Sequence record: MF360958.1
Length of the DNA: 64,000 bases
Direction: 5' to 3' (one strand)
In this document: piece after piece, positions 16,685-58,204 of the stretch
How the letters are laid out: every line of letters begins with the position of its first letter
Numbering within the stretch: position 1 is the stretch's first letter
The notes under the pieces: generated by a model
The model's database searches: none
Told to the model about the DNA's origin: nothing
Seen by the model: only the letters and a program-made list of their open reading frames with translations
Position numbers and translations under genes: made by a program

Positions 16685-18655
16685 ATGAGAAAACCAGTCG
16701 ATATGACAAAGTTTGCATCGTCTGTGACAAAGAAAATGAATGTAAGTCACGGCTTTAATGATCCGCATGTATGGATCAGTACCGGAAATTTCATTCTCAA
16801 TTATCTTATTTCAGGCGATTTTAATAAAGGTGTACCTTTAAGCAAAGTAACAATGTTTGCCGGAGATAGTGGGTGTTTACCAGAAGATGCTATTGTAAAT
16901 GTCCGGTTTTGCAAGAAAAATTTATTTGTAAAGAACCATGCAAAACAAATGACTGTAAAAGAACTTAAAGAACTATATAATTCAGGAGAATATGATATAG
17001 AACTGGAAACACCCGATGGTTGGCAATCTGTTACTGAGTGGTTTGATAAAGGCTTACTTGATATGGTAACTATTCAAACTGAAAATTTTTCCACTAGATG
17101 CGCTGTAAATCATCTTATTCAAAATTCTAATGATGAATGGATAAAAGCTGAAAACCTTAACGTTGGTGATAAGATACAAACGGTTATAGGTGTTGAAGAA
17201 GTTTGTAGTGTAGAATTAATGAATGAAAAAGAAAATTGTTATGACTTCACAATAGACCATCCAAATCATCGTTATTTTGGCGACGGTATTGTTTCCCACA
17301 ATAGCGGTAAATCGTTCATCGCTTCCGGTAAAATTGTTAAGAACTGTCAGGATCGCGGCATTATGCCCGTTATTTTTGATTCTGAAAACGCTTTGGATGA
17401 ACAATGGCTTAAAGACCTTGGGGTAGATACCGATCCTGAAAAACTTCTTCGTTTCCAAGTGTCTATGATTAATGATGTTGGGAAGATCATGTCTGAATTC
17501 ATTGAAATGTATCGTAAAGAATACATGGACCTTCCTAAAGAAGAACAGCCATGTTTCATGTTTATTGTGGATTCTCTTGGTATGCTTCTTACTGAAACAG
17601 ATGTTGATCAATTCGACAAAGGCGACATGAAAGGTGATATGGGTCGCAAACCTAAACAACTTAACGCACTTGTACGTAATGTAGTTAACCAAGTTGCTGA
17701 TAAAAATATTGGTGTTGTATTCACAAACCATACATATGCATCTCAGGATATATTTGACCCGGACGATAAGATAAGTGGTGGTTGTCTTGTAGCAGATACC
17801 GATATTCTCACGGATAATGGTATAAAATCTATTCAAGATTTTGAAGTAGGAGATAAAGTTCTTTCTAGTGATGGTCAATATCATGATGTAATTCAAACTT
17901 GGCATTATCAGAAAGAAACTTATGAAATAGAACTCGAAGATGGAACTGTATTTGAATGTTCTCCTGAACATAAGTTTCTTGTAAAAGATGATAATAATGA
18001 ACAAGTTTGGAAAGAGATTCAGATAATGTCAGAAAATGATGTTGTTTATACCTATTCTGAAAATAAATTAGTTTTAAAAGTAAAATCTATAACAAAAACT
18101 AATAATATTAAAGATGTCTATGATATTCAAGTTGAAGATACTGGCGAGTATATACTTGCAGATAATAACGTTGTAAGTCATAACTCAGGACAAATTTTCG
18201 CCTCATCTATTGTAGTAGCTTCTAAAAAACTTAAACTTAAAACCGACGATGAAGGTAATAAGACAAGTGAGGTAAATGGTATACGTTCAATGGTTAAAAT
18301 CATGAAGTCTCGTTACGGACGTGCTTATGAAACTGCGAAGTTGAATATTCGTTTCGATAGTGGTCTTGAACCTTATTCTGGTTGTCTTGATTATTTTGAA
18401 AAATTAGGTGTTATTCAACAAGTAGGTAATAAACTACAATATATTGATAAAGATGGTAATGAACATAAACAATTCCGTAAAAAGTTTGAAGCTGATCATG
18501 ATCTTCTTCAAAAAATTATTGATGAATGGGATTATGATAAGTATCGTCTTATTTCTTCAGAACAAGTAGAAAATTCATCTGGTCTAGTTACTGATCAAGA
18601 AAAGGAAGAACTTAAACAAGATAGTGAAGAAAAACCAGAAGATGATAATAGTTAA
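16685..18655 (+). CDS. uvsX: UvsX/RecA recombinase precursor with two inteins (about 379 aa after splicing)
   Basis: WISTGN..LNYLISG, Walker A GDSG|SGKS, FDSENALD, VDSLG, GDMGRK, FTNHTY, SS.VV; start revised to ATG 16685 after GGAGG. Confidence 0.93.
   Translation: MRKPVDMTKFASSVTKKMNVSHGFNDPHVWISTGNFILNYLISGDFNKGVPLSKVTMFAGDSGCLPEDAIVNVRFCKKNLFVKNHAKQMTVKELKELYNSGEYDIELETPDGWQSVTEWFDKGLLDMVTIQTENFSTRCAVNHLIQNSNDEWIKAENLNVGDKIQTVIGVEEVCSVELMNEKENCYDFTIDHPNHRYFGDGIVSHNSGKSFIASGKIVKNCQDRGIMPVIFDSENALDEQWLKDLGVDTDPEKLLRFQVSMINDVGKIMSEFIEMYRKEYMDLPKEEQPCFMFIVDSLGMLLTETDVDQFDKGDMKGDMGRKPKQLNALVRNVVNQVADKNIGVVFTNHTYASQDIFDPDDKISGGCLVADTDILTDNGIKSIQDFEVGDKVLSSDGQYHDVIQTWHYQKETYEIELEDGTVFECSPEHKFLVKDDNNEQVWKEIQIMSENDVVYTYSENKLVLKVKSITKTNNIKDVYDIQVEDTGEYILADNNVVSHNSGQIFASSIVVASKKLKLKTDDEGNKTSEVNGIRSMVKIMKSRYGRAYETAKLNIRFDSGLEPYSGCLDYFEKLGVIQQVGNKLQYIDKDGNEHKQFRKKFEADHDLLQKIIDEWDYDKYRLISSEQVENSSGLVTDQEKEELKQDSEEKPEDDNS
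16874..17302 (+). mobile_element. Mini-intein 1 in UvsX (143 aa), inside the Walker A loop
   Basis: Starts CLPEDA, block B RCAVNH, ends GIVSHN followed by Ser; no endonuclease domain. Confidence 0.92.
17783..18184 (+). mobile_element. Mini-intein 2 in UvsX (134 aa), at the SGG|SGQ (loop L2) site
   Basis: Starts CLVADT, block B CSPEHKF, ends NVVSHN followed by Ser. Confidence 0.92.
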
Positions 18656-22586: not shown

Positions 22587-22766
22587 TTATTCCTTACTAA
22601 TATAATTATTGAAATAAAATTGTAGAACGTTTCTCATTCTGGCGAGTTTAATAAAAGCAAAACGTGAAGTTTTAACCATTATTTCTGCTTCACGCAGAGC
22701 ATCTAAGTGATTTTTATTTTCTTCAATTATTTCATTACTTCCTCTTAATATATCATTAATTTTCAC
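22587..22766 (-). pseudogene. 59-aa internally deleted remnant of an ART-like array gene (below the ORF-track cut-off)
   Basis: GTG start: VKINDILRGSNEIIEENKNHLDALREAEIMVKTSRFAFIKLARMRNVLQFYFNNYISKE; family N-terminus fused to the type-B EIM.K..RF C-terminus. Confidence 0.7.
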
Positions 22767-22779
22767 ACTATACCTAAAT

Positions 22780-23679
22780 TCATTCGTTTAAAATGTATAC
22801 CTTCCAGTAATAATTAATTATCTTATCTATTCTAAATTGTGGTATCAAAACAAATTGTTCGGTTTTGATCATTATTTCCTTGTCACGAGGAATATTACTT
22901 ATATCATCTGTGATTTCAATATTCTCAATATATTCATTAAACATTTTTAAATAATCGTTAATAACAAACATAAAGCTACTATAAATGATATCGATTATGT
23001 CTTCATCATTAGTAATATGCTTTTTAATAACAGTTTTTATTTTCTTTTCCTCTAGCGAATATCGATTAATATAATCTATTAATTTATAAATATCACCCCG
23101 TAGTGTAAGTAAGAATTCATTTTTGAAAAAATCTGAATTAATATTTTTATTACTTTTAAGCATTGTTTGTCTTATTTCATTAATAATATGTTCTACATCT
23201 ATAACGTCAGATATACTATATTGAGCAGCAAAATCTCTTATATAAGGATTATAATAATATGTTGTATTCCCAACGGGTATTATATAGTACGGTTCGCCAT
23301 ATTCTAGTACCCTATGTTTATTTTTATAAGAGAATAATAAACTTCTAACTGGTTCCCCTATTTCATCTTTCGCAATACTGTTAACATAATTATGAATAAA
23401 TGGTTGTGTATCTTTTGGTGAACGTCTATATTTAAATTCATTTATTACGGGATTGTTATAAACTTTTTCTCGACCATGAAATAAATTATTTTGATTTAAC
23501 TCATCTAAAAGTTTTCCTAGTTTATTATCATATTCTTTAGAACTCGTATCTGTAGTGCTTAAACCTTTTAAATATTTTTCTATTAAAGGTTTATAATTTT
23601 GTTGAAAGAATTGAGTGTTAAATATAAACTCGTATTTTTCTTTTAGGTTATCTTCTTTTAAAATATCATTAACTTTCAT
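22780..23679 (-). CDS. ADP-ribosyltransferase-like protein, type B copy 3
   Basis: MKVNDILKE leader; LFHG; R..PKDT..IHN.VN; VRSLLF...EYGEPY; KEIMIKT.QFVL. Confidence 0.6.
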   Translation of the reverse strand: MKVNDILKEDNLKEKYEFIFNTQFFQQNYKPLIEKYLKGLSTTDTSSKEYDNKLGKLLDELNQNNLFHGREKVYNNPVINEFKYRRSPKDTQPFIHNYVNSIAKDEIGEPVRSLLFSYKNKHRVLEYGEPYYIIPVGNTTYYYNPYIRDFAAQYSISDVIDVEHIINEIRQTMLKSNKNINSDFFKNEFLLTLRGDIYKLIDYINRYSLEEKKIKTVIKKHITNDEDIIDIIYSSFMFVINDYLKMFNEYIENIEITDDISNIPRDKEIMIKTEQFVLIPQFRIDKIINYYWKVYILNE

Positions 23680-24637
23680 AACCTTCCCTTCTTTTTATTT
23701 CATCCACCACATCATCAAAAGCAAATCTATTAATAAACAATGTTTCTTTTGTATCAAGCATACATTCTGAATAAAGATAAATATCATTTACATTTTGTGT
23801 AGATTTAATAGTATCAATGTAATTTTCTTTTATATTAGTATAAAAGTAACTTTTAATAAATTCTATTATATTATTTTGTTCATCATCCATAATTTCAATG
23901 ATTAAATCTTCAACATAGCTATATAAAATAGTATCGTTCTTACTATCCGATATATTAGGTTTAAATAAATGATTATACATACCTTTAGATATAGATTGCT
24001 TAATAGTATTATAAGAAGATTGTTCCCCTTTAATAGCACGTGAATAATGATTAGAATGGAATGGTATGTAAAATTTTCGAAATGAGGAATCGTTAGAAAG
24101 GTTTGAAATAATATCATTAACATTATGAGTCAAGTATTGGTTTAGTTTGTATTTTGTCTTTGATGTGGATTTCTTGATATATTTTGTGATTTTGTAATAA
24201 ATGTCTTTATATAATTCTTTAAAATCAAGAACATTATCTTTATCATTATAAAAGTCATCTATTTGATCTGAATAGTATATTGTATAATCATATAATGGAA
24301 TAATAACATATTCGAATTCGCCATATATATTAGCTCTAGCCGGTGTTGAAGAAACGAAAAGTTTACTTCTTATTTTTGAACCAAATTCTTTCTCAGACAA
24401 TTCATTAACAATATTATGGATTGTCGGTTCGGTATCACGTGGTTTTTCTCTATCAGTAATGTCGTGTAGTGCGTAAATACCCACATCTTTATCAGTACCA
24501 TGATATAAATTTTTTCCATTGATCATATTCTGTTTGTTAATATTGTAAAATTTTGTATCTTGAATGATATCCATCACTTCATTGATTTCGTCTTTACTCA
24601 ATTTATTTTTACTTTCAAATAGTTGCTTAATTTTCAT
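23669..24637 (-). CDS. ADP-ribosyltransferase-like protein, type A copy 3
   Basis: MKIKQLFE leader; LYHGT; REKPRDT; IRSKLFVSSTPARANIYG; YSECMLD. Confidence 0.62.
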   Translation of the reverse strand: MKIKQLFESKNKLSKDEINEVMDIIQDTKFYNINKQNMINGKNLYHGTDKDVGIYALHDITDREKPRDTEPTIHNIVNELSEKEFGSKIRSKLFVSSTPARANIYGEFEYVIIPLYDYTIYYSDQIDDFYNDKDNVLDFKELYKDIYYKITKYIKKSTSKTKYKLNQYLTHNVNDIISNLSNDSSFRKFYIPFHSNHYSRAIKGEQSSYNTIKQSISKGMYNHLFKPNISDSKNDTILYSYVEDLIIEIMDDEQNNIIEFIKSYFYTNIKENYIDTIKSTQNVNDIYLYSECMLDTKETLFINRFAFDDVVDEIKRREGYES

Positions 24638-25549
24638 TGTTGGTCCTTTATATAATGTTCTAGATAATACTTACCAAGCTCAAAAAATAAATCGGTAGGT
24701 TCTTCAATTCTATTTTCCATTGCTAACAATACAAATCGATTCGTTTTTGCCATAACTTCTACATCATCAGGAATATTAGCCATGTTTTTTGTTGTATCAA
24801 CATCTTCCAGATAATCATTTAATAATTCACGTTTGTTCTCAAATATTGATTTGATATGATTAAAAGCGCCTTCAATGTATTTTTTTTTCAATATCATACT
24901 TTTTCATTCTTTTATAGATGTTTTTTAATGATTCATCAGAAAAATCATCTGTGTTTTGTTCTATATAAAATCTAATATCATTAATAAAATCAATTAATAA
25001 TCTTCGTGTTTCTTTATTTTCATGTTCATTTGAATATTTAAAAATAGCTTTAATCCAATCAGGATAGTTCAATGTATTACTTGATAAATTAAGATCAACT
25101 GTTAAATCATTAATATTTTTATTATAGAAGAATTTCGCATGATCTATTGGAAAAAATATATATGGTTCTCCATATTCTGCTGCGTTATGTATGCTATTTG
25201 TTATATAGAATAAATTTCTTATAGGTTCACCTAGTAATTGTTTTGATTCCTTATTTATATGATTATGAAATAAGACCATCGAATCTTTAGGCATTTGTCG
25301 ATAACGAAAAGTTAATATTTTGTTAGTATATTCCTCCGGTTTTTGTGAACCATGATAAAAGAGATGATCTGTTAAGTTATCGTTGAAAGATAAACTTTTA
25401 AGTTTCTTAATTAAATTATCTGAACTTAATTCTTTATCATATATCGGTTTTAAATAAGTTTGAAAATAATCACCTTCGATGATAGTTTTAAATATATCAT
25501 TAATATTGTCTTCATTATTGTTTTCTATAAGTATATCGTTAATCTTCAT
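24634..25549 (-). pseudogene. ADP-ribosyltransferase-like protein, type B copy 2, split by a +1 frameshift at an A9 run (24880-24888)
   Basis: True start MKINDILIE at 25549; FYHGS, PKDS, EYGEPY in ORF 24872-25576; EVMAKTNRFVL in ORF 24634-24897; A8 would give one 304-aa protein. Confidence 0.7.
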
Positions 25550-26510
25550 TTGTATAATCTCTAATAATATCTTCAATAATATCTGCGTATAAACTTGGTT
25601 TTAAGAATAAAGCCTGTTTTGCATCTAAAATAGATTCTGAAAAATAATCTAAATTCTCAATCTTTTGTGTAGTTTCTATTGTTTCTATATATTTTTTATC
25701 GATATTAGTAACAAAATGATTTTTTATAATTTTGTATATAGTGTCATTTAAAGAATAAATAGTATCTTTTAAAAGTTGTTCAAATAGTTTTAAAGCTTCA
25801 ATAATTTCGTTTTCTTTATCATTATCATCTATATCATCTATATCATCAGCAAAAGTATTTTTAAATAAATCTGTGATTTTACTTACTACTAGATTTTTAG
25901 GTAGTGTTCCTGTTCTTAAAATTTCTATATAATTTTGAGGACTTATTATAGATAAATCTTCAAGGAAACTATCTTTATTATCATCTATAATTTTATTAAA
26001 ATCTTTGTTGATAAGTTTTGAAATATCGTTTACATATTGATGTTTTGTTAAAGCATCATATATTTTTTCAAATATTAAAGATTCTAGTTCATCATAATTT
26101 ATAATAATGCTCAAGTCAGCATAAAGATCACGAATATTGTTTGATTGATAAATGTTATAATCTCCTAGCGGAATGATTTTATAAGTATTAATTCCATAAC
26201 TAGAAGCAATAGAATTATTAGGTGTAATGAATAGTTTATTACGTATCTTTATACCAAAATGCTGTTTAGAAAGTTCATTAACAATATCGTGAATAACAAC
26301 GTCAGTATCTTTAGGTTGGGAACGTTCTGTAATATCAATGATATCCATATTAGATAATGTTACGTCAGTACCGTGATGTAATGCATTACCATCTTTAATA
26401 GATTCAAAATTATTAGTGAAATAATTGCTGTTTACAATAAGATCTTTATAATAATAAAAGTCTTCGTTACTTATAGAATCGTTCTCTTTTAACAGATCAT
26501 TAATCTTCAT
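25539..26510 (-). CDS. ADP-ribosyltransferase-like protein, type A copy 2
   Basis: MKINDLLKE; LHHGT; RSQPKDT; IRNKLFITPNNSIASSYG; FSESILD. Confidence 0.62.
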   Translation of the reverse strand: MKINDLLKENDSISNEDFYYYKDLIVNSNYFTNNFESIKDGNALHHGTDVTLSNMDIIDITERSQPKDTDVVIHDIVNELSKQHFGIKIRNKLFITPNNSIASSYGINTYKIIPLGDYNIYQSNNIRDLYADLSIIINYDELESLIFEKIYDALTKHQYVNDISKLINKDFNKIIDDNKDSFLEDLSIISPQNYIEILRTGTLPKNLVVSKITDLFKNTFADDIDDIDDNDKENEIIEALKLFEQLLKDTIYSLNDTIYKIIKNHFVTNIDKKYIETIETTQKIENLDYFSESILDAKQALFLKPSLYADIIEDIIRDYTNED

Positions 26511-27412
26511 TATTGTTCCTTTATATAGTTTTCAAAATAATATTTTCCTAAAGGTACAAAAACATCATCTTCTGAACCAATAGTTGGTAAAAGTATAAAA
26601 CGATTAGGCTTGGCCATAACTTCACCTTCTTCGGGTATACTTGCGATACTATCCGTTTTCTTTATAAATCCTATATAATTGATAACTTTATCACGAAAGT
26701 ATTCTATACGTTTTTCAACATATCGAGCTATATAATCTGCATAATTTTCATCTAAACCAAAGTCTTGATATATTGAATAGATATACTTCTTTACTTTCTC
26801 AACAGAATCTTTTGATAATGTAATATCATCATTCTCTAATATATATTCCATTATTTGTTTTCTAAACGGCATTGTTTTGTCTGATTTTTTAATAGGTTCA
26901 TCATAAAATTCATGAAATTTAAATAAATTTTGAGCATCAAATGTTATTGTAAAATCAGATATATTAGGATTATAATAGAATTCACATTCATCTATAGGAA
27001 AAAATGCGTAGAATGAACCATACTCTGTTGCTTCTGATAATTCTTTAGTTAAGAATAAAAGACTTCTTACAGCTTCGCCTAGTTTTTCTTTGCTTAGCTC
27101 ATTAACATAGTTATGAATAAATTTAAGTGTATCTTTAGGTTGTTTGCGATATTTAAATGTTAATACTTTATTACTGTATTCTTTATCAAACATTCCATGT
27201 AATATATAGTGTTTAGATAATTCCTTCATTAAATTTTCATTATGTAGTGCTGTTTCAATAGAATTACTGTCTGAAGATTTTTCATTTTTTAAATACCTAT
27301 CATATATAGGTTTCAAGTAATTTTGAAAATAGTAACCATCAATTATTGCTTGATATAAATGATCTTTAGAATCATCTTTTGAATTTTCTTTAAGTATATC
27401 ATTAACCTTCAT
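26510..27412 (-). CDS. ADP-ribosyltransferase-like protein, type B copy 1
   Basis: MKVNDILKE; ILHG; RKQPKDT; VRSLLFLTKELSEATEYG; GEVMAKPNRFIL. Confidence 0.62.
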   Translation of the reverse strand: MKVNDILKENSKDDSKDHLYQAIIDGYYFQNYLKPIYDRYLKNEKSSDSNSIETALHNENLMKELSKHYILHGMFDKEYSNKVLTFKYRKQPKDTLKFIHNYVNELSKEKLGEAVRSLLFLTKELSEATEYGSFYAFFPIDECEFYYNPNISDFTITFDAQNLFKFHEFYDEPIKKSDKTMPFRKQIMEYILENDDITLSKDSVEKVKKYIYSIYQDFGLDENYADYIARYVEKRIEYFRDKVINYIGFIKKTDSIASIPEEGEVMAKPNRFILLPTIGSEDDVFVPLGKYYFENYIKEQ

Positions 27413-28398
27413 TTTGATTTTTTCCTTAAAATTTCCGAAACTATTTGGTTTTTAGCCGTTTTGCTAAGAAACAATACAGATTCAGAATCAATTATACATT
27501 CGGAGTGGTAATCTAATTCAGTTACATATTTTGTTTTTTCAATAGTATCAATGTAATTCGTCTGTATAGCATCTTTAAAGTGTTTATTTATAAGCTCGAT
27601 AATATCTTCTTTATTTTGAATCATTATTTTTTGCACTAACGATTCAAGTATTCCGAAAACAGAATCATCACCGCTTCCATCATCATTAGATACATAATCA
27701 TCAAGATTAATGAAATCTGTGAATAACAATTCATTGAATTTTATACTTACGAAATGAGCTAAATCATAGTAGCTTTGTTCATCGCCATTGAGGATAGAGT
27801 GATAAGTACTTGATTTATGATTAAATAAATATTTATTAAAATACTGATCTTTAACATTTTCCATATAGTTTGAAAAATTAAATTTTAATATTTCACTAAT
27901 ACTTTGTATTTCTTCATAGTTGTTGTTGATAATGCTTTGATAAACGTACTTATGAATTTTACTAGCGATGTTTTTGTATTGTGATATTTTAAAATCATCA
28001 CCATAAAAATCATCTATAGTGTTTGAATAATAGAGCTGATATGAACCAATAGGGTAAACGATATATTTAAACTTGCCATAAACCACCCCTTGGAATTCAG
28101 AAAGCGTAGTAAATAATTTGTTTCGAATTTCTATACCAAATTGTTGTTTTGACAACTCATTTGCAATATCATGTATAGCTTTATTACTATCACGTGGCTT
28201 CTCGCGATTCTTAATATCAAAGTGGCTGATATTTCCGTGATCTACTGTTGTATTATGATAAAGATTGAAATTGGTATTTTTTAGAATCGTATTTTTATTA
28301 TTTTTATAGAATTCGCTATTCATAATCAAGTCAACAGCATAATCAATTTCCTCCCGAGTTATTTTTTTATTTTCATTCAATAAATTATTGATTTTCAT
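27409..28398 (-). CDS. ADP-ribosyltransferase-like protein, type A copy 1
   Basis: MKINNLLNE; LYHNT; REKPRDS; IRNKLFTT...VYG; HSECIID. Confidence 0.6.
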   Translation of the reverse strand: MKINNLLNENKKITREEIDYAVDLIMNSEFYKNNKNTILKNTNFNLYHNTTVDHGNISHFDIKNREKPRDSNKAIHDIANELSKQQFGIEIRNKLFTTLSEFQGVVYGKFKYIVYPIGSYQLYYSNTIDDFYGDDFKISQYKNIASKIHKYVYQSIINNNYEEIQSISEILKFNFSNYMENVKDQYFNKYLFNHKSSTYHSILNGDEQSYYDLAHFVSIKFNELLFTDFINLDDYVSNDDGSGDDSVFGILESLVQKIMIQNKEDIIELINKHFKDAIQTNYIDTIEKTKYVTELDYHSECIIDSESVLFLSKTAKNQIVSEILRKKSK

Positions 28399-28428
28399 AA
28401 ATTTTTCTCCTAAATTTACATTTAATGG

Positions 28429-28436
28429 TATTTATA
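28429..28436 (-). promoter_or_regulatory. Late promoter TATAAATA driving the ART-like array
   Basis: Exact consensus about 30 nt upstream of the 28398 start, GGAG RBS between. Confidence 0.7.
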
Positions 28437-29992: not shown

Positions 29993-32077
29993 TTAATAAA
30001 CTGGTAGTGGCGGAACATAATCATCATCTTCGTCATCATCCCCATTACCTGTAATCCCCAACTGATCCATAAATTCATCATCTTCTTTCATCGTTTCCAT
30101 AGCCATTCGTATACAAATTACCATAGCCATAACCAAATCATCATGTTCACCCGTAGATGCCGCATACGTATTCCCACGACGAACAAAATGTTGCATTTGC
30201 TCAAGCAAAGGACGACTGCTAACTTCTAGTTTTTCGTTCTCAACCCAACTCTTTAAACGCATACAAGCAGTATGTTTACTTTCCTTGTTGGTATTATAAC
30301 CTTTACGGAAACGATTTCTTTGCCCCTTGCGCATTGGATTGTAGGGTTCACTCATAAAGTATCCAAAGAAATTGTCTTCACCGTACTCATCAATCAATAC
30401 CAATGGCGCTTCACCAACTGTATTGTTTTCAAGCGTCCAACGAACATTGTCTTCCTCAAATCCAGCTTCTTCAAACATATCCAATATACGTCTAAGTATC
30501 TTCAACTGTTCAGGCACATCACTTTTATTGTGCATCCATTCACCAACCTGAACCATTGTGGGGAATTCAAAAATTTGTATTGCAGAATAATCACCACCTG
30601 TACCCAAACTTGGATCATAACCAATCAGGTAAATATAATCCTTACTTAGTTCTTTGTACCAACGTATTTCGCCCTTACTTTTAGCAATTGGACTTTTCGT
30701 TTCAAGATTAGCCAGCTTTACCGCATTAATGAGTGTTTCTTCTTCTGATATGAATTCTAATTCATGCTCACGTAAGAAATATTCTTCACCGAACTGTCTA
30801 ATCTGATCGTATTTGTATTCTTCATCACGTTCAGGATGTTCATCCCATTTTACCTTCAATGCTTTAAAACCATTCACTCCAACTTCCATATCATTGCCAT
30901 AATCATCAATGGTCTTGTTCGCCAACTTCCACATGTTTGCAAATAGTGTATCATCGGTAGTAGGTGTGGTGGTGATAATACATTTACCACCTGTATTACT
31001 ACCTAAAATACCATTTTGTAAGAATGTATGGGTATGAGGAACCGTGAAATCATATGTAAAGTCTTGATAAGATTTTTCAATACGAGTTATTGTTAACCAT
31101 TGTGTTTCATACTTTTGATTACACTTAAATATTTGAATAGCTTGTTTATTCACACGATATTCATAGTTGAAATTGTTCAACATTTGAACAAATATACTTA
31201 ATGCATGTTCGTTCCATTTTGGAATAATATAACCGCGTGTTTCGATAAATCGATCCAAAGTACGTCTGGTTATGTTCATATAATACTCTGGATTGTTTTC
31301 AAAGTTACGATCTATATCATGAGGACTGACTTCAAGATCCCCTTCAATATTCATACCACGATCAATACGTAAGAACATTCCTGTGTTTAACTGTTCAGCA
31401 GGAATCATTCGTGCATTATCATTAATGTTTCTTCGACTGTATAAAGGATGATCAGGCGTAACTTCAACAATTTGACCATTTTCTAATCGTATTCGATATG
31501 TTTCAGAGGCAGGTGAAACATAACCATGAGAAACATCTTCGATACCACGTTTACCCCAAACCTTGAGATTATCAATCTCGAAATATTCACCAATAGAACG
31601 ATTTTCAAAATAATTGTCTATCTTTTCAAAACCATTGTCGGTCAGAATAATCGTGCCCGGAGCCAAGCATGAAATAGTAGGATAAATGGATGCCCAAAAC
31701 TTTGTCGCAATATTCTTACGGACGAAAGCAAATTCGTCACACTGAGATACATTCCCGCCATTGGCGTATATAGTATTTGAATCGGATTCGTATATATCAT
31801 ACGTATCTTCTAAGAAATCGTATTTTATAGAAGATATCTTTTCATAACCATTGATTGTTTCTATATATTGACCAACGGAAAGATTATAAGCAGGAATTTT
31901 TTCATTATTAATAATGAATTCGTGATCGGTAGTACAATGTATTTCACGATTGGTTTCAGTAGTAATGCGATAGGTATGTTTGTTACTGGATGGATTTTTA
32001 ATAACACCTTTAAAATTCTCCCAACCGTGTTGAGTCTCGATTTCGTATTTGTCATTTTCAATAAAAAACTGATTCAT
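29993..32077 (-). CDS. gp17: Large terminase, C-terminal half (Walker B to nuclease), preceded by a split-intein C-fragment and containing a second intein
   Basis: CDEFAFV Walker B, IITTTP, FLREHELEF, YLIGYDPSLGTGGDYSA, ENN..G, HDDLVMA; no Walker A half in the window; own CATAAATA promoter and GAGGG RBS. Confidence 0.9.
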   Translation of the reverse strand: MNQFFIENDKYEIETQHGWENFKGVIKNPSSNKHTYRITTETNREIHCTTDHEFIINNEKIPAYNLSVGQYIETINGYEKISSIKYDFLEDTYDIYESDSNTIYANGGNVSQCDEFAFVRKNIATKFWASIYPTISCLAPGTIILTDNGFEKIDNYFENRSIGEYFEIDNLKVWGKRGIEDVSHGYVSPASETYRIRLENGQIVEVTPDHPLYSRRNINDNARMIPAEQLNTGMFLRIDRGMNIEGDLEVSPHDIDRNFENNPEYYMNITRRTLDRFIETRGYIIPKWNEHALSIFVQMLNNFNYEYRVNKQAIQIFKCNQKYETQWLTITRIEKSYQDFTYDFTVPHTHTFLQNGILGSNTGGKCIITTTPTTDDTLFANMWKLANKTIDDYGNDMEVGVNGFKALKVKWDEHPERDEEYKYDQIRQFGEEYFLREHELEFISEEETLINAVKLANLETKSPIAKSKGEIRWYKELSKDYIYLIGYDPSLGTGGDYSAIQIFEFPTMVQVGEWMHNKSDVPEQLKILRRILDMFEEAGFEEDNVRWTLENNTVGEAPLVLIDEYGEDNFFGYFMSEPYNPMRKGQRNRFRKGYNTNKESKHTACMRLKSWVENEKLEVSSRPLLEQMQHFVRRGNTYAASTGEHDDLVMAMVICIRMAMETMKEDDEFMDQLGITGNGDDDEDDDYVPPLPVY
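30995..31669 (-). mobile_element. Contiguous intein in TerL (225 aa) with a shrunken endonuclease remnant
   Basis: Starts CLAPGT after YPTIS, block B VTPDHPL, ends YDFTVPHTHTFLQNGILGSN followed by Thr. Confidence 0.9.
31742..32077 (-). mobile_element. Intein C-fragment (112 aa) of an atypically split intein, ending in Gln
   Basis: No block A; has EIETQHGWENFKG, block B CTTDHEF, block F/G YDIYE...YANGGNVSQ followed by Cys. Confidence 0.8.
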
Positions 32078-33416: not shown

Positions 33417-34475
33417 ATGAGTACCAGCTTAGACGAATACTTTCAAAATAGTGATGAATCTACTCGCGAACAAATTCTTGAGAACATTATCTTTGAAAAT
33501 CATGGATATAGTAACCATGATTTAACAAAAATTAGTCTCAATAATTATTACATTAAAAAGATTATTGATGGTGATATTAATAATAATACGAGAGCGAGTA
33601 TTTTTGGCATTATTTCCTTAATGTTTGCATTAGGTGAAAGCCTATGTGATGAAACATGGAAAATGGTATTTGAGAAAAAGCCTCGTTGTTTAATGGTGTA
33701 TCCTCAAGCGCGTTCAAAACCGTTGAAAGATGATATTATTGAGTATGGTTTAAGAAAATATTATGAACATGGCGAAAAAGTCTTAAACTCTTTTCCAGAT
33801 AGTCATTGTATTAAAGAGATTTTTGAAATTCAGAAATCCGTTAATGATGAATTCTATAAAATCATTATTGATAATGAGCCGGATCTTATTCCATTTTTGG
33901 AAGATTTACCACAATCGATTATCGATTATTTTGTTAATCTGATGAATGACAATGGCTATGGTTATGATTTTTCAAACATTAACGACTATAGTGAAGATGT
34001 ACTTTGTGAAATCATAGAAGCATTTCCTTTTGCGTATATTCTTATTTCTAATCCTAGTGATGAAATTAATAAGATAATGATTGATCATAATATATTTTAC
34101 ATAAAAATTTTAAGAAATCAAACAGATAATTTCTATTCATACGTACTAGATAAAGAAATACGACGTGTGGATATTTTTAAAAGTTTTGTTAATCCTTCAA
34201 AAGAGGTTCAATATAAAGCTATTGGTATGAATCCCTCTTCAATATCGCATGTTAGCGATCCTGATGAACATTCTCAGCAATTAGCTATTGAATACAATCC
34301 TGAAAATATTGTGTATATAGATGCTCCTTATGAGCATATACTGTTAAAAGCGTTAAAAACTGAATGGAATGTGTCTGTATATGAGATTGTTTGTAATAAT
34401 ATCCAAAATTATAGTGATGAATTCAGGCATTACTTTAACAAGTTAAAACTGGAACGAGGCATTCCGGTAGGCTAA
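33417..34475 (+). CDS. Helical-repeat protein, KLKL-tail family member 3
   Basis: NPS.E.Q..A repeats; W...Y...FRHYFNKLKLERG; TTGAAA-N18-TATGAT promoter upstream. Confidence 0.8.
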   Translation: MSTSLDEYFQNSDESTREQILENIIFENHGYSNHDLTKISLNNYYIKKIIDGDINNNTRASIFGIISLMFALGESLCDETWKMVFEKKPRCLMVYPQARSKPLKDDIIEYGLRKYYEHGEKVLNSFPDSHCIKEIFEIQKSVNDEFYKIIIDNEPDLIPFLEDLPQSIIDYFVNLMNDNGYGYDFSNINDYSEDVLCEIIEAFPFAYILISNPSDEINKIMIDHNIFYIKILRNQTDNFYSYVLDKEIRRVDIFKSFVNPSKEVQYKAIGMNPSSISHVSDPDEHSQQLAIEYNPENIVYIDAPYEHILLKALKTEWNVSVYEIVCNNIQNYSDEFRHYFNKLKLERGIPVG

Positions 34476-34499
34476 TATTGCGACTATAAGAGAAATTAT

Positions 34500-35597
34500 A
34501 TGGAACATGATACGACACTTAACGATTATTTTTATTCTTGTGATGAAAAACAACGTGTGAGAATTCTTCATGATATTATTTTTGAAGATAACGGGTACTA
34601 CTGTGATGACCTTAGAAAGATTGATCTAAATGAACATTATATTAACAAAATTATCGAGTTTAACAGTACCGTATCCACGATAAACTTAATAACTACTGTT
34701 CCTGTAAGCAAACTGACTGACAATAATTTAAAGAATATATTCAAACATAACCATCGTTTCATAAAAGTATATTCTTATATATTTGAGAAACCGCTTTCCG
34801 AAGATGTTTTTCAATATGCATTACAATGTTCTTTCGATAATGGTGAAGTTATAGCAGATCATCCAGATCCAGATTATTTAGATAATGATATAAGGCGATT
34901 TATATCACTTCATGAACCTATTAGTGATGATTCAAAAAAGATTATTATTAAAAACAATATAGTATACTTACCATTTTTAGAAGGTTTGTCTGAATCTGTG
35001 AAAGAGTTTACATGTGGGTTTGTTAAAAATAACATAGATTCAAAATACGATTATAGAAATATCAATAAATTTTCTCAGGATGTTCAATGCGATATTGTAC
35101 GTCAATATCCCTATCTGTATGAACTAATTGATAATCCTAGCGAAGCTGTTAATCGAGAGTTGATTGAAGCAGATCCTTATTGGATTAGTGTTGTCAATAA
35201 TCAAACGGGTGATTTACAATTAAGGGCGCTGTATATACTTTATGGAAGTAATGGTATTATTGGTACGCCCATATTTTCTTTTTTCAAGAATCCTTGTAAA
35301 AATGTTCAATATGAAGCAGTACGGTTGGATCCAATTCAAATATCGTTGATTAAAGATCCAAATTATGATATGCAGAAATTAGCAGTTGAGCATAATCCAG
35401 ACTGTATTAAACATATCAAACATCCTTATGAAGATATTGCGCGTGTTGTATTAGATAGTGGTTATTGGAATGCTAGAATATATGATGTTATTAAAGATAA
35501 CATTCATCAATATAGCAATGAATTTAATCATTATTTTAATAAATTAAAGTTGAAATATGGTGATCCTAATAATTTCACAGAAAGATCTACTAAATGA
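34500..35597 (+). CDS. Helical-repeat protein, KLKL-tail family member 4
   Basis: Paralog of 33417; FNHYFNKLKLKYG. Confidence 0.8.
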   Translation: MEHDTTLNDYFYSCDEKQRVRILHDIIFEDNGYYCDDLRKIDLNEHYINKIIEFNSTVSTINLITTVPVSKLTDNNLKNIFKHNHRFIKVYSYIFEKPLSEDVFQYALQCSFDNGEVIADHPDPDYLDNDIRRFISLHEPISDDSKKIIIKNNIVYLPFLEGLSESVKEFTCGFVKNNIDSKYDYRNINKFSQDVQCDIVRQYPYLYELIDNPSEAVNRELIEADPYWISVVNNQTGDLQLRALYILYGSNGIIGTPIFSFFKNPCKNVQYEAVRLDPIQISLIKDPNYDMQKLAVEHNPDCIKHIKHPYEDIARVVLDSGYWNARIYDVIKDNIHQYSNEFNHYFNKLKLKYGDPNNFTERSTK

Positions 35598-35661
35598 TAT
35601 AGGTTGAATAAAGAAGATGAACAATGGTTCAAACATCAGGTTAACAAACAGAAATTAGAGA

Positions 35662-36783
35662 ATGAATTTTATGACTAATATAAGATTGCATAGAGAATTA
35701 ACCGAATTAAATAATTTTTTCAATAATAGCGATGTAATATTTCAACATTATTTTTTGGATAAAATTATTCACCAAATTGATAGTTATAAAGACGACCTAC
35801 TTTCATATGTTGATTTGAGTGATTATTATCAAAAACAAATAATTGATTGTAAGTTGTATAGATCAGATATATTCGCATCATTTAGTAATCTTAACGGTAT
35901 CTATATTGCGCATCATTTTAAAAATTTAACACAAGATAATATATGTTATATGATTGATAAGAATCCATTGCCTTCTTTTATCATACATCATGTTTCAATA
36001 AAAGATGAGAACGTGTTAAAATATTGTTTACAACGTTTTCTGAAATCTTCAAAAAATAGAAGTATTGAATACTGCTCTGATGGTATGTTTGAAAAAATTC
36101 TGCAACAACATTACCCTGTATCTGAAGATATACAACTATTAATTATACACTACTATCCTCGATTTATTATTCATTTTGATGTTGATGATCTCTACCCAAG
36201 TGTATTGAATAAGTTTTATGAAATCATGGGTAAAAAATCGAGTATTGATTTTCGAAATATTAATGATTATCAAGAAAATGCTTTATCTGGTATTGTCTTT
36301 CAATATCCTTTTATATATAAATTTATAAAAAATAAAACATATTTAATCAATAATTCGTTTATTCAAAATGATCCTGATAATATTCGATTCATTGATAATT
36401 CTAGTGAAGACTTACAATTAATGAGTGTTAGAATCAGTGGATGTATTACGTTAGATTATCATTGTAATTCGTTACGTCATATTAATAATCCGTCTGAAAA
36501 TGTTATATGGAAAGCTATTAAATCGAATACTAGATGTATAGAATATGCTATTAATCCTAGTTATGAAATGCAAAAATATTGTATCAAAAGAAATCCTTAT
36601 AGTATAGTTTATATCAAGAATACAATACCAGAAGATTTACAGTTAATTGCTCTGGAAAATTTATGGAATATAGAAAATTATAATCATATATTAAATAATT
36701 TAGGTCCGCACAGTGATTATTTCAATCATGAACTAAAAAAATTAAAGTTAAAAAATGGATATATTGAGGATGGTACTGAATAA
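35662..36783 (+). CDS. Helical-repeat protein, KLKL-tail family member 5
   Basis: LQLIALENLW...Y...FNHELKKLKLKNG. Confidence 0.8.
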   Translation: MNFMTNIRLHRELTELNNFFNNSDVIFQHYFLDKIIHQIDSYKDDLLSYVDLSDYYQKQIIDCKLYRSDIFASFSNLNGIYIAHHFKNLTQDNICYMIDKNPLPSFIIHHVSIKDENVLKYCLQRFLKSSKNRSIEYCSDGMFEKILQQHYPVSEDIQLLIIHYYPRFIIHFDVDDLYPSVLNKFYEIMGKKSSIDFRNINDYQENALSGIVFQYPFIYKFIKNKTYLINNSFIQNDPDNIRFIDNSSEDLQLMSVRISGCITLDYHCNSLRHINNPSENVIWKAIKSNTRCIEYAINPSYEMQKYCIKRNPYSIVYIKNTIPEDLQLIALENLWNIENYNHILNNLGPHSDYFNHELKKLKLKNGYIEDGTE

Positions 36784-57332: not shown

Positions 57333-57352
57333 GGCGGCGTAATACCGCCTTA
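57330..57352. terminator. Hairpin between convergent genes
   Basis: TAAGGCGG-CGTAATA-CCGCCTTA. Confidence 0.7.
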
Positions 57353-58204
57353 ATTATTTTCATCATTTAAAAATTCTTCATCTTTTTTAATCTCATTGAT
57401 GATAATTTTAACTGCTTTTTTCCATAAATCTTTATTCATTTCTTTCATTTTATAAAACACATTAGATTCAAAGTCTTCAATAATGTCAGAAAAACGTTGA
57501 ATACGTGCAGATGAATCACCAATAAAATAACGTAAAAGTTGAATTTTATCATTACGATTAAGTTTAGCATTACGTTGTAATGCTCTAATTCTATTTTTAA
57601 AAGTATTATATTCGCTTTTAATCGTAGGAAGAAATTCAGCAGCACTTGTAACATTTTTAATAGCAGTTTCCATACTACCATCAAAATTTGGCCCTGTTTG
57701 TAATTGTTTAGGATCTTTTTTACCAAAACTATTTACTTGTATATAATGCTGTAGTTCATGTTCAATTGTATTCATATATTCTTCTATTAAATATTTTAGA
57801 AATTCTTTCTTCATATCTTTATTGGCCATGAGTATTTTTAAATGTTCTATATTAATTAAGAGAGTATTTGTCTTAGTATCAAATCCTCCATAGTTGTATT
57901 TTCCGTCGGATATAAAACGAATATGAAGTTTATTAGTTTCCATATTATATTTGAAATCGTAACGAGATGTATCTATTTCTGTTTCAAAAACAACATTTTT
58001 TGGATGATCAAAATTGAAAGATTTATATAATTTAGTATATTGGGGGTTATGGTCTATATAATCCATTATACCTAAAGCTTCATTTTCATCATATCCTATT
58101 TCTGTTAAAAATGATATTATATAGGCATATAGAAATTCATTAACTGTTTCGATAAGTTTATGAGGTACATCAATCATAGATTCATATAATTTAGCCAAAC
58201 GCAT
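57350..58204 (-). CDS. HExxH zincin-like metallopeptidase with MRLAKLYE leader
   Basis: YGGFDT...LLINI...TIEHELQHYIQ. Confidence 0.65.
   Translation of the reverse strand: MRLAKLYESMIDVPHKLIETVNEFLYAYIISFLTEIGYDENEALGIMDYIDHNPQYTKLYKSFNFDHPKNVVFETEIDTSRYDFKYNMETNKLHIRFISDGKYNYGGFDTKTNTLLINIEHLKILMANKDMKKEFLKYLIEEYMNTIEHELQHYIQVNSFGKKDPKQLQTGPNFDGSMETAIKNVTSAAEFLPTIKSEYNTFKNRIRALQRNAKLNRNDKIQLLRYFIGDSSARIQRFSDIIEDFESNVFYKMKEMNKDLWKKAVKIIINEIKKDEEFLNDENN

Follow-up and report, generated by a model that had tools for sequence, protein, structure and literature searches.

What is the role of six adjacent, homologous genes, all annotated as hypothetical in GenBank, in the genome of a jumbo phage? 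The question is raised by a minus-strand array at positions 22780-28398 of a 64,000-nucleotide window of Salicola phage SCTP-2 (MF360958.1; 100% identity over the window), a 440-kb T4/Rak2-related jumbo myovirus (group 2.2) from a solar saltern, whose host is a salt-loving bacterium; coordinates are given as positions in this window, whose base 1 corresponds to approximately base 186001 of the record. The genes occur in the order A1-B1-A2-B2-A3-B3, as two alternating subtypes. An earlier note, made from the sequence alone, had proposed that they encode virion-packaged ADP-ribosyltransferases (ARTs) that are injected into the host and work as A/B pairs. The array is interpreted here, with a probability of about 70%, as five intact paralogues, one frameshifted paralogue and a deletion remnant of a family of head-packaged and probably ejected cargo proteins. 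The packaging part of this interpretation is well supported, by evidence from the N-termini of the proteins and from the virions of a related phage.

N-terminal peptide and virion association

The proteins of all six copies start with a conserved peptide of 8-9 residues that ends in (L/I/F)xE and has the consensus M-[KR]-[IV]-x-x-[IL]-[LF]-x-E. In B1, this putative capsid-targeting/cleavage peptide (M-K-V-x-D-I-L-x-E, 27386-27412, minus strand) spans residues 1-9, as it does in A1. The T4 capsid targeting sequence comprises 10 residues, of which residues 8 and 10 determine processing, and is removed by gp21 (PMC9026906); it is the only feature that unrelated T4 internal proteins have in common (PMC9026906; PMC3012670). 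An N-terminal peptide of the T4 type, about 7-19 residues long and ending in (L/I)-x-E (PMC9026906), was recognised in all six copies. When the pattern M-[KR]-[IVLFW]-x(2,3)-[ILMVF]-x-E was counted over the SCTP-2 record, except bases 300001-304999, it was found at the head of 24 open reading frames (ORFs), where its internal frequency would predict 0.87, an enrichment of about 25-fold at gene starts. Nearly all of these 24 ORFs begin at annotated gene starts and most lie outside the family. Within the family, [LIVMF]xE was present between residues 4 and 13 in 119 of 150 representatives, compared with a background of 20%.

The same tag, in the form M-[KR]-h-x-x-L-x-E, was observed on ART-PolyVal proteins confirmed by Pfam, one from a related metagenomic phage (L004:9003-9488, minus strand) and one from Alishewanella phage Slickus01 (L010:301-810, plus strand), which indicates that the tag behaves as a portable address and not as part of one fold. 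A protease of the kind that removes such peptides in T4 is encoded by SCTP-2 as gp93, annotated as a T4 gp21-type prohead protease and clustered with the portal and gp23-type capsid genes; gp93 is 49.7% identical to gp204 of Agrobacterium phage Atu_ph07 (MF403008), and gp204 matches the Pfam family Peptidase_S77 with an E value of 1.4e-21.

The most direct evidence for packaging comes from Atu_ph07 itself. In an abutting minus-strand gene run of this phage, gp53-gp65, the genes gp54-gp63 were identified as ten tandem full-length family members by hidden Markov model (HMM) search (E 3e-29 to 2e-5). The tag is present in a different version, each of gp53-gp63 beginning with M-[KR]-W-x-x-L-x-E or, in the case of gp63, with M-R-L-F-Q-L-L-E. 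All ten family members are listed in the electrospray tandem mass spectrometry (ESI-MS/MS) table of the Atu_ph07 virion, with 3-15 unique peptides and 12-47% coverage, as is the whole run gp53-gp65, with 3-31 unique peptides and 12-47% coverage (PMC6102473 Table S5). Within the first 75 kb of the genome, every one of the 12 proteins with the tag (gp43 and gp53-63) belongs to the virion, compared with 131 of 714 genes genome-wide. The protein at the end of this array, gp53 (L002:39484-41820, minus strand), is a tagged virion protein of 778 aa that is named in UniProt as a Zeta-toxin-domain protein, and its similarity to the family was detected by Foldseek only (E 4.9e-4).

Upstream of the array, the T4-type late-promoter-like motif TATAAATA lies 31 nt before the ATG of A1 (28429-28436, minus strand), a distance also given as 38 nt, and a ribosome-binding site, AGGAG, lies 8 nt before it (28407-28411, minus strand). 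Two further copies of TATAAATA occur on the coding strand inside the array, and about 10 of the 24 sites in the window fall in a short spacer immediately ahead of a gene on the same strand. When the relaxed motif [TCG]ATAAATA, that is, TATAAATA or a one-off variant, was counted at -65 to -16 of gene starts, it was found upstream of 9 of 19 tag-bearing SCTP-2 genes and of 46 of 436 other genes (Fisher p 1e-4). A gp55-like late sigma factor has been reported for SCTP-2 (PMC6102473), and the array may be transcribed late, to judge from its upstream sequence. Tag and motif also coincide at a candidate for head cargo elsewhere in the window, a 284-aa protein (57350-58204, minus strand) of phrog_38692, a group of unknown function, which starts M-R-L-A-K-L-Y-E and has TATAAATA 56 nt upstream of its gene.

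The claim of the earlier note that the proteins are packaged by way of a T4-like N-terminal peptide is thus supported by the enrichment of the tag, its occurrence on unrelated proteins, its correlation with the late motif, the gp21-type protease and the virion homologues of Atu_ph07. According to the mechanism proposed, the array genes would be transcribed late as one unit from the T4-type late promoter, and their overlapping stop and start codons may couple their translation. By analogy with T4, the N-terminal peptide would dock each protein in the scaffolding core of the prohead and would then be cut off after its Glu by gp93. The mature proteins would remain in the filled head, as the homologues in purified Atu_ph07 virions suggest, and would probably exit with the DNA at infection.

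Several observations weigh against this interpretation. The virion proteomics concerns the Atu_ph07 homologues and not SCTP-2 itself, and speaks for virion association, not for a position inside the head, removal of the tag or ejection. The family proteins are acidic (pI 4.5-5.9), unlike the basic internal proteins of T4. The exact late-promoter sequence claimed in the earlier note is indeed present before A1, but TATAAATA shows no window-wide enrichment (24 sites against 24.1 expected). Finally, the virion of Atu_ph07 is 'hairy', and according to the authors of that work the cluster of coding sequences (CDS) 31-76 may encode unique, novel structural proteins (PMC6102473).

Conserved core and predicted fold

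Conservation was counted over an alignment of 84 members, with B1 numbering. R116, P139, D153 and E264 were found to be invariant (84/84), position 95 is Thr or Ser in all 84, and D94, H100, N104, F120, Y131, G132 and Y246 are conserved in at least 90%. The AlphaFold2 model of B1, built on the same 84-sequence alignment, reached a mean predicted local distance difference test score (pLDDT) of 91.2 and a predicted template-modelling score (pTM) of 0.87, and that of A1 a pLDDT of 79.7. Both models have a common plan: N-terminal helices lead into a half-core of the type beta-alpha-beta-alpha-beta-hairpin, after which comes a purely helical insert (about 95 residues long in B, about 150 in A), and the core is completed by three further strands and a terminal helix. 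In B1, the N-terminal half of the core (residues 67-153; 26954-27214, minus strand) contains the HG motif, R-x-x-P-x-D-T/S, the H-x3-N helix, R116, F120, Y131-G132, P139 and D153. The variable all-helical insert, delimited by the model and by regional identity, follows at residues 154-248 (26669-26953, minus strand), and the C-terminal half (residues 249-300; 26513-26668, minus strand) consists of strands bearing the invariant E264 and the terminal helix. In A1, the split alpha/beta core is interrupted by a long helical insert at residues ~135-285.

The variable middle described in the earlier note was confirmed by regional comparison, the identity within subtypes being 15-27% in the middle, against 35-47% and 30-53% in the N- and C-terminal parts of the core, respectively. 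The sequence motifs quoted there are present as well, except that A1 has HN and not HG, and that the Glu of A3 stands one position earlier.

The polar set formed by R116, D153 and E264, together with the near-invariant D94, T/S95, H100, N104 and Y131, suggests an enzyme or a small-ligand/phosphate site, as far as conservation can indicate, and the variable helical insert probably diversifies the targets. A more far-reaching proposal, doubtful at present but worth stating, is that the core is a new enzyme fold, or an ART beyond detection. It would then be the principal type of effector that a large clade of uncultured jumbo phages delivers from the head; the insert would direct every paralogue to a host molecule of its own, and the two subtypes would act jointly. 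PD-(D/E)xK nucleases, 2H phosphoesterases and His-Me finger proteins were also considered and set aside by inference, the motif spacing and partner residues appearing unsuitable.

Alternative explanations

The proteins could instead be structural parts of the virion rather than proteins delivered to the host, either a phiKZ-like inner-body or scaffold-remnant set or fibres on the head or tail surface, present in several copies for reasons of dosage or architecture. This is considered unlikely, although all ten Atu_ph07 homologues are recovered from virions with good coverage, the Atu_ph07 authors proposed structural roles for CDS 31-76 of the hairy virion, and giant phages are known to have paralogous families of inner-body proteins that undergo processing (PMC9026906). 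An invariant set of Arg, Asp, Glu, His, Asn and Tyr over 84 members at about 20% identity is, however, less usual in a packing protein than in an active or ligand site. Moreover, verified enzymes (ART-PolyVal) bear the same tag, the tagged neighbour of the Atu_ph07 array is fused to a Zeta-toxin kinase domain and, by T4 precedent, cleavage of the tag inside the prohead would be incompatible with an external fibre site.

More specific is the proposal of the earlier note, according to which the six proteins are injected ARTs of the diphtheria-toxin/PARP type with a His-Tyr-Glu (H-Y-E) triad, which work as A/B pairs and whose insert selects the host target. The order of the motifs suits an ART, with HG[ST] ending the first core strand, an aromatic-Gly pair preceding one of the later strands and, late in the sequence, an invariant Glu where a strand begins. 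The position of the His in "HG" is occupied by His in 63 of the 84 members only, by Arg in 16 and by Lys in 2. ART clades are known with either His or Arg as the first catalytic residue, and the replacement by Arg can be counted in favour of the proposal. The Tyr of the proposed triad is Tyr in 76 members, Phe in 3 and Trp in 2, and the Glu is present in all 84. The residues that are invariant in the family, R116, P139, D153 and E264, together with H100 and N104, nevertheless differ from the H-Y-E triad.

The searches for similarity also argue against an ART. Pfam, NCBIfam and PADLOC scans covered the window proteins and 84 relatives, and the two fragments of the frameshifted B2 (gp216 and gp215) were always searched separately. 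No ART family was matched in Pfam by any of the seven window pieces or, at E <= 0.1, by any of the 84 members, nor was any matched in the NCBIfam scan, and a profile search of the sequences in the Protein Data Bank (PDB) gave no ART and low-complexity helical matches only. True ART-PolyVal domains are readily recognised by Pfam, both in a neighbouring gene on a related contig and in the genomes of two isolate phages. The comparison with ART folds by Foldseek that the earlier note had proposed returned no ART for either model: against 350,542 PDB chains the best match of B1 had an E value of 2.2, with template-modelling (TM) scores <= 0.16 and no ART listed, and the best match of A1 had an E value of 0.24, the split core lowering the sensitivity of both searches. 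In BFVD, the significant Foldseek matches were uncharacterised proteins of SCTP-2, Atu_ph07 and uncultured phages only. When the 84-sequence profile was aligned by hhalign with three Pfam-verified ART-PolyVal domains, the probability was 1.9% (E 0.026, 29 columns), and with a single sequence it was 1.6%; the alignment spans only the YHG[ST] stretch, which is placed on the YHGT of phage ART-PolyVal, a coincidence that can be counted in favour of the proposal. Single-member matches to ArdA, CNP_C_terminal and SduA/DUF4263 (18 bits, one Atu_ph07 copy) were treated as chance.

By the sequence comparisons and predicted models at hand, nothing places the core in the ART superfamily, and the pairing that the proposal assumes is not conserved, as described below. 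The ART part of the earlier note is therefore regarded as very unlikely; the small chance still allowed for it is due to the 95-150-residue insert, which splits the core and weakens local structure search. Because ART-PolyVal proteins of related phages carry the tag, packaged ARTs are plausible in this phage group, where they probably exist as separate genes.

Least probable of all is that the N-terminal motif is not a packaging signal (but, for instance, a translation-initiation preference or a product of recent gene conversion) and that the SCTP-2 proteins are ordinary intracellular late proteins, for although the direct virion data come from Atu_ph07 rather than SCTP-2 and N-termini rich in Lys, Ile and Asn are favoured in AT-rich genomes, the motif persists in proteins of which the remainder is only about 20% identical, recurs in Atu_ph07 as a different sequence version (M-[KR]-W-x-Q-L-x-E), heads far more SCTP-2 ORFs than chance would give and marks virion proteins without exception in the first 75 kb of Atu_ph07.

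Layout of the array and its two subtypes

The six-gene tandem array with two alternating subtypes and overlapping junctions reported in the earlier note is real, as judged from the ORF coordinates, and all junctions overlap by 1-11 nt. Five of the genes are intact, all on the minus strand: A1 (gp219, 27409-28398, 329 aa), B1 (gp218, 26510-27412, 300 aa), A2 (gp217, 25539-26510, 323 aa), A3 (gp214, 23669-24637, 322 aa) and B3 (gp213, 22780-23679, 299 aa), the last being the positional counterpart of the last gene in the array of the metagenomic contig L007. The fourth gene, B2 (24634-25549, minus strand), is broken by one frameshift into two ORFs, gp216 and gp215, each of which matches the family. 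A degenerate seventh copy, gp212 (22587-22766, minus strand), had been overlooked; this 59-aa ORF starts 13 bases after B3, shows HMM domains at profile positions 2-21 and 285-318, and matches a B-type protein of L007 by BLASTP with an E value of 4e-6. Since it joins a tag-like N-terminus, in which the Glu is replaced, to a B-type C-terminal tail, gp212 is interpreted as a copy with one large internal deletion.

Among the SCTP-2 copies, pairwise identity is 30-35% between A proteins, 29-36% between B proteins and 20-29% between A and B. The separation of A and B in the phylogeny, which the earlier note had called for, was recovered, the split being present in 97% of 200 neighbour-joining (NJ) bootstraps. 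Only this split is robust, the contents of the named clades being weakly supported (10-54%). The contig L007 is syntenic with SCTP-2 over a terminase-like gene, the array and a topoisomerase gene, and its array consists of four copies in the order A-A-B-B. Lone family members, gp399 and gp445, occur elsewhere in SCTP-2, and the ten copies of the Atu_ph07 array form one clade of their own in the NJ tree. Because of the order in L007 and the lone members, the A-B alternation is regarded as real in SCTP-2 but not conserved elsewhere. Equal counts of the two subtypes (3:3 in SCTP-2 and 2:2 in L007) are the sole hint of pairing. Of the A/B pairs of the earlier note, the two clades hence survive, as two old, co-occurring subtypes, while the case for obligate pairing is weak; the strict alternation in SCTP-2 most likely reflects repeated duplication of an A-B unit and not a requirement.

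Size and distribution of the family

All SCTP-2 copies match PHROG 15932, with E values from 1e-34 to 1e-123, and more weakly PHROG 11975, both of unknown function. No Pfam family was matched by the copies of the array. A HMMER profile search of 1.84 billion cluster representatives, from a protein library clustered at 50% identity, returned 3013 proteins at E <= 1e-3, of which 609 reached E <= 1e-10, the counts being those of cluster representatives. The representatives that were looked up were all metagenomic, unnamed proteins, some of them encoded on contigs of 357 and 444 kb, a size that suggests uncultured jumbo phages as hosts of the family genes. Among 50,697 isolate phage records searched by tblastn with several members, family members were found in SCTP-2 and Atu_ph07 only. 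A search for related loci with the A-type alignment yielded none in IMG/VR and one 3-kb JGI contig. One metagenomic protein, P0043 (2645 aa, 356,683-bp contig), contains at least five tandem family cores and a weak GNAT match, and may be explained as a polyprotein, as a polyvalent protein or as a fusion made in gene calling.

Other genes of SCTP-2

A second array of paralogues was observed just past the terminase gene (33417-36783, plus strand), with three tandem proteins of 352, 365 and 373 aa, all in phrog_25923 (function unknown). Three separate genes are annotated as 'terminase large subunit' in SCTP-2, namely gp224 (29993-32077, minus strand), gp267 (record 256428-257321) and gp534 (record 429356-429748); the gene of L007 corresponding to gp224 shows a faint match to inteins. 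A UvsX-like recombinase of 656 aa (16685-18655, plus strand) matches UvsX only from residue 206 on, in two stretches, and the syntenic gene of L007 has faint matches to inteins and homing endonucleases; for these reasons, an intein is possible in the UvsX-like gene.

Comparison with known systems

With the ART superfamily (H-Y-E and R-S-E clades, and phage PF18760 ART-PolyVal) the family shares HG[ST] at a strand end, the alternation of His and Arg, a later aromatic residue, a late invariant Glu and, as regards ART-PolyVal of related phages, the tag. It differs in that Pfam, PDB sequences, Foldseek and hhalign lend it no support as an ART, in its invariant residues and in a core split by a helical insert of 95-150 residues.

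Polyvalent proteins of phages and conjugative elements are described as carrying effector domains that are delivered with the DNA (Iyer et al. 2017, as cited in PMC7824862). In a similar manner, gp53 of Atu_ph07 fuses a region similar to the family by Foldseek to a Zeta-toxin domain, P0043 contains its repeated cores, and ART-PolyVal, LPD29 and DUF3846 domains occur in neighbouring genes. Unlike polyvalent proteins, the members are mostly stand-alone tandem genes, and none of the named polyvalent-protein domains in Pfam was matched.

The inner-body and ejection families of phiKZ/SPN3US-like giant phages also comprise several paralogues packaged in a jumbo-phage head, and a gp21-related protease likewise cuts after Glu at a short motif (PMC9026906). 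SCTP-2, however, belongs to the T4/Rak2-related group 2.2, its motif is (L/I/F)xE rather than S/A-x-E, and no sequence or structural match was found between the family and phiKZ/SPN3US-like inner-body proteins.

The closest resemblance is to the T4 internal proteins IPI, IPII, IPIII and Alt. Both systems have a short N-terminal peptide in which a hydrophobic residue stands at the second position ahead of the Glu, a protease of the Peptidase S77 gp21 family in the genome, a late-promoter-like motif upstream, virion-associated proteins (here the homologues), unrelated cargo with only the tag in common and a diversified, fast-evolving locus. On the other hand, the family shows no sequence similarity to any T4 protein (tblastn, 50,697 phage records), and its members are acidic and about 300 aa long, whereas the T4 internal proteins are basic and of 8-20 kDa. 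T4 packages several unrelated small proteins; here, one conserved family has been amplified 6-10 times in tandem, and its cleavage and ejection are proposed by analogy. The statement of the earlier note that no such phage system had been described therefore holds for the family itself, but not for diversified, capsid-targeted internal proteins, a known T4 theme (PMC3012670, PMC9026906). Tagged, diversified head cargo is thus familiar from T4. What is new is one conserved family without a match among annotated families or solved structures, its 6-10 tandem copies and wide spread in uncultured jumbo phages, and the presence of about two dozen tagged genes in one genome. In T4, a ten-residue tag loads arbitrary proteins into the head, and such cargo counters host defences; the jumbo phages appear to apply the same tag logic on a much larger scale. 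The family offers a concrete starting point for learning what is delivered along with the DNA of giant phages, and the tag combined with the late-promoter-like motif may serve as a simple sequence rule to predict head cargo in uncultured T4-related jumbo phages.

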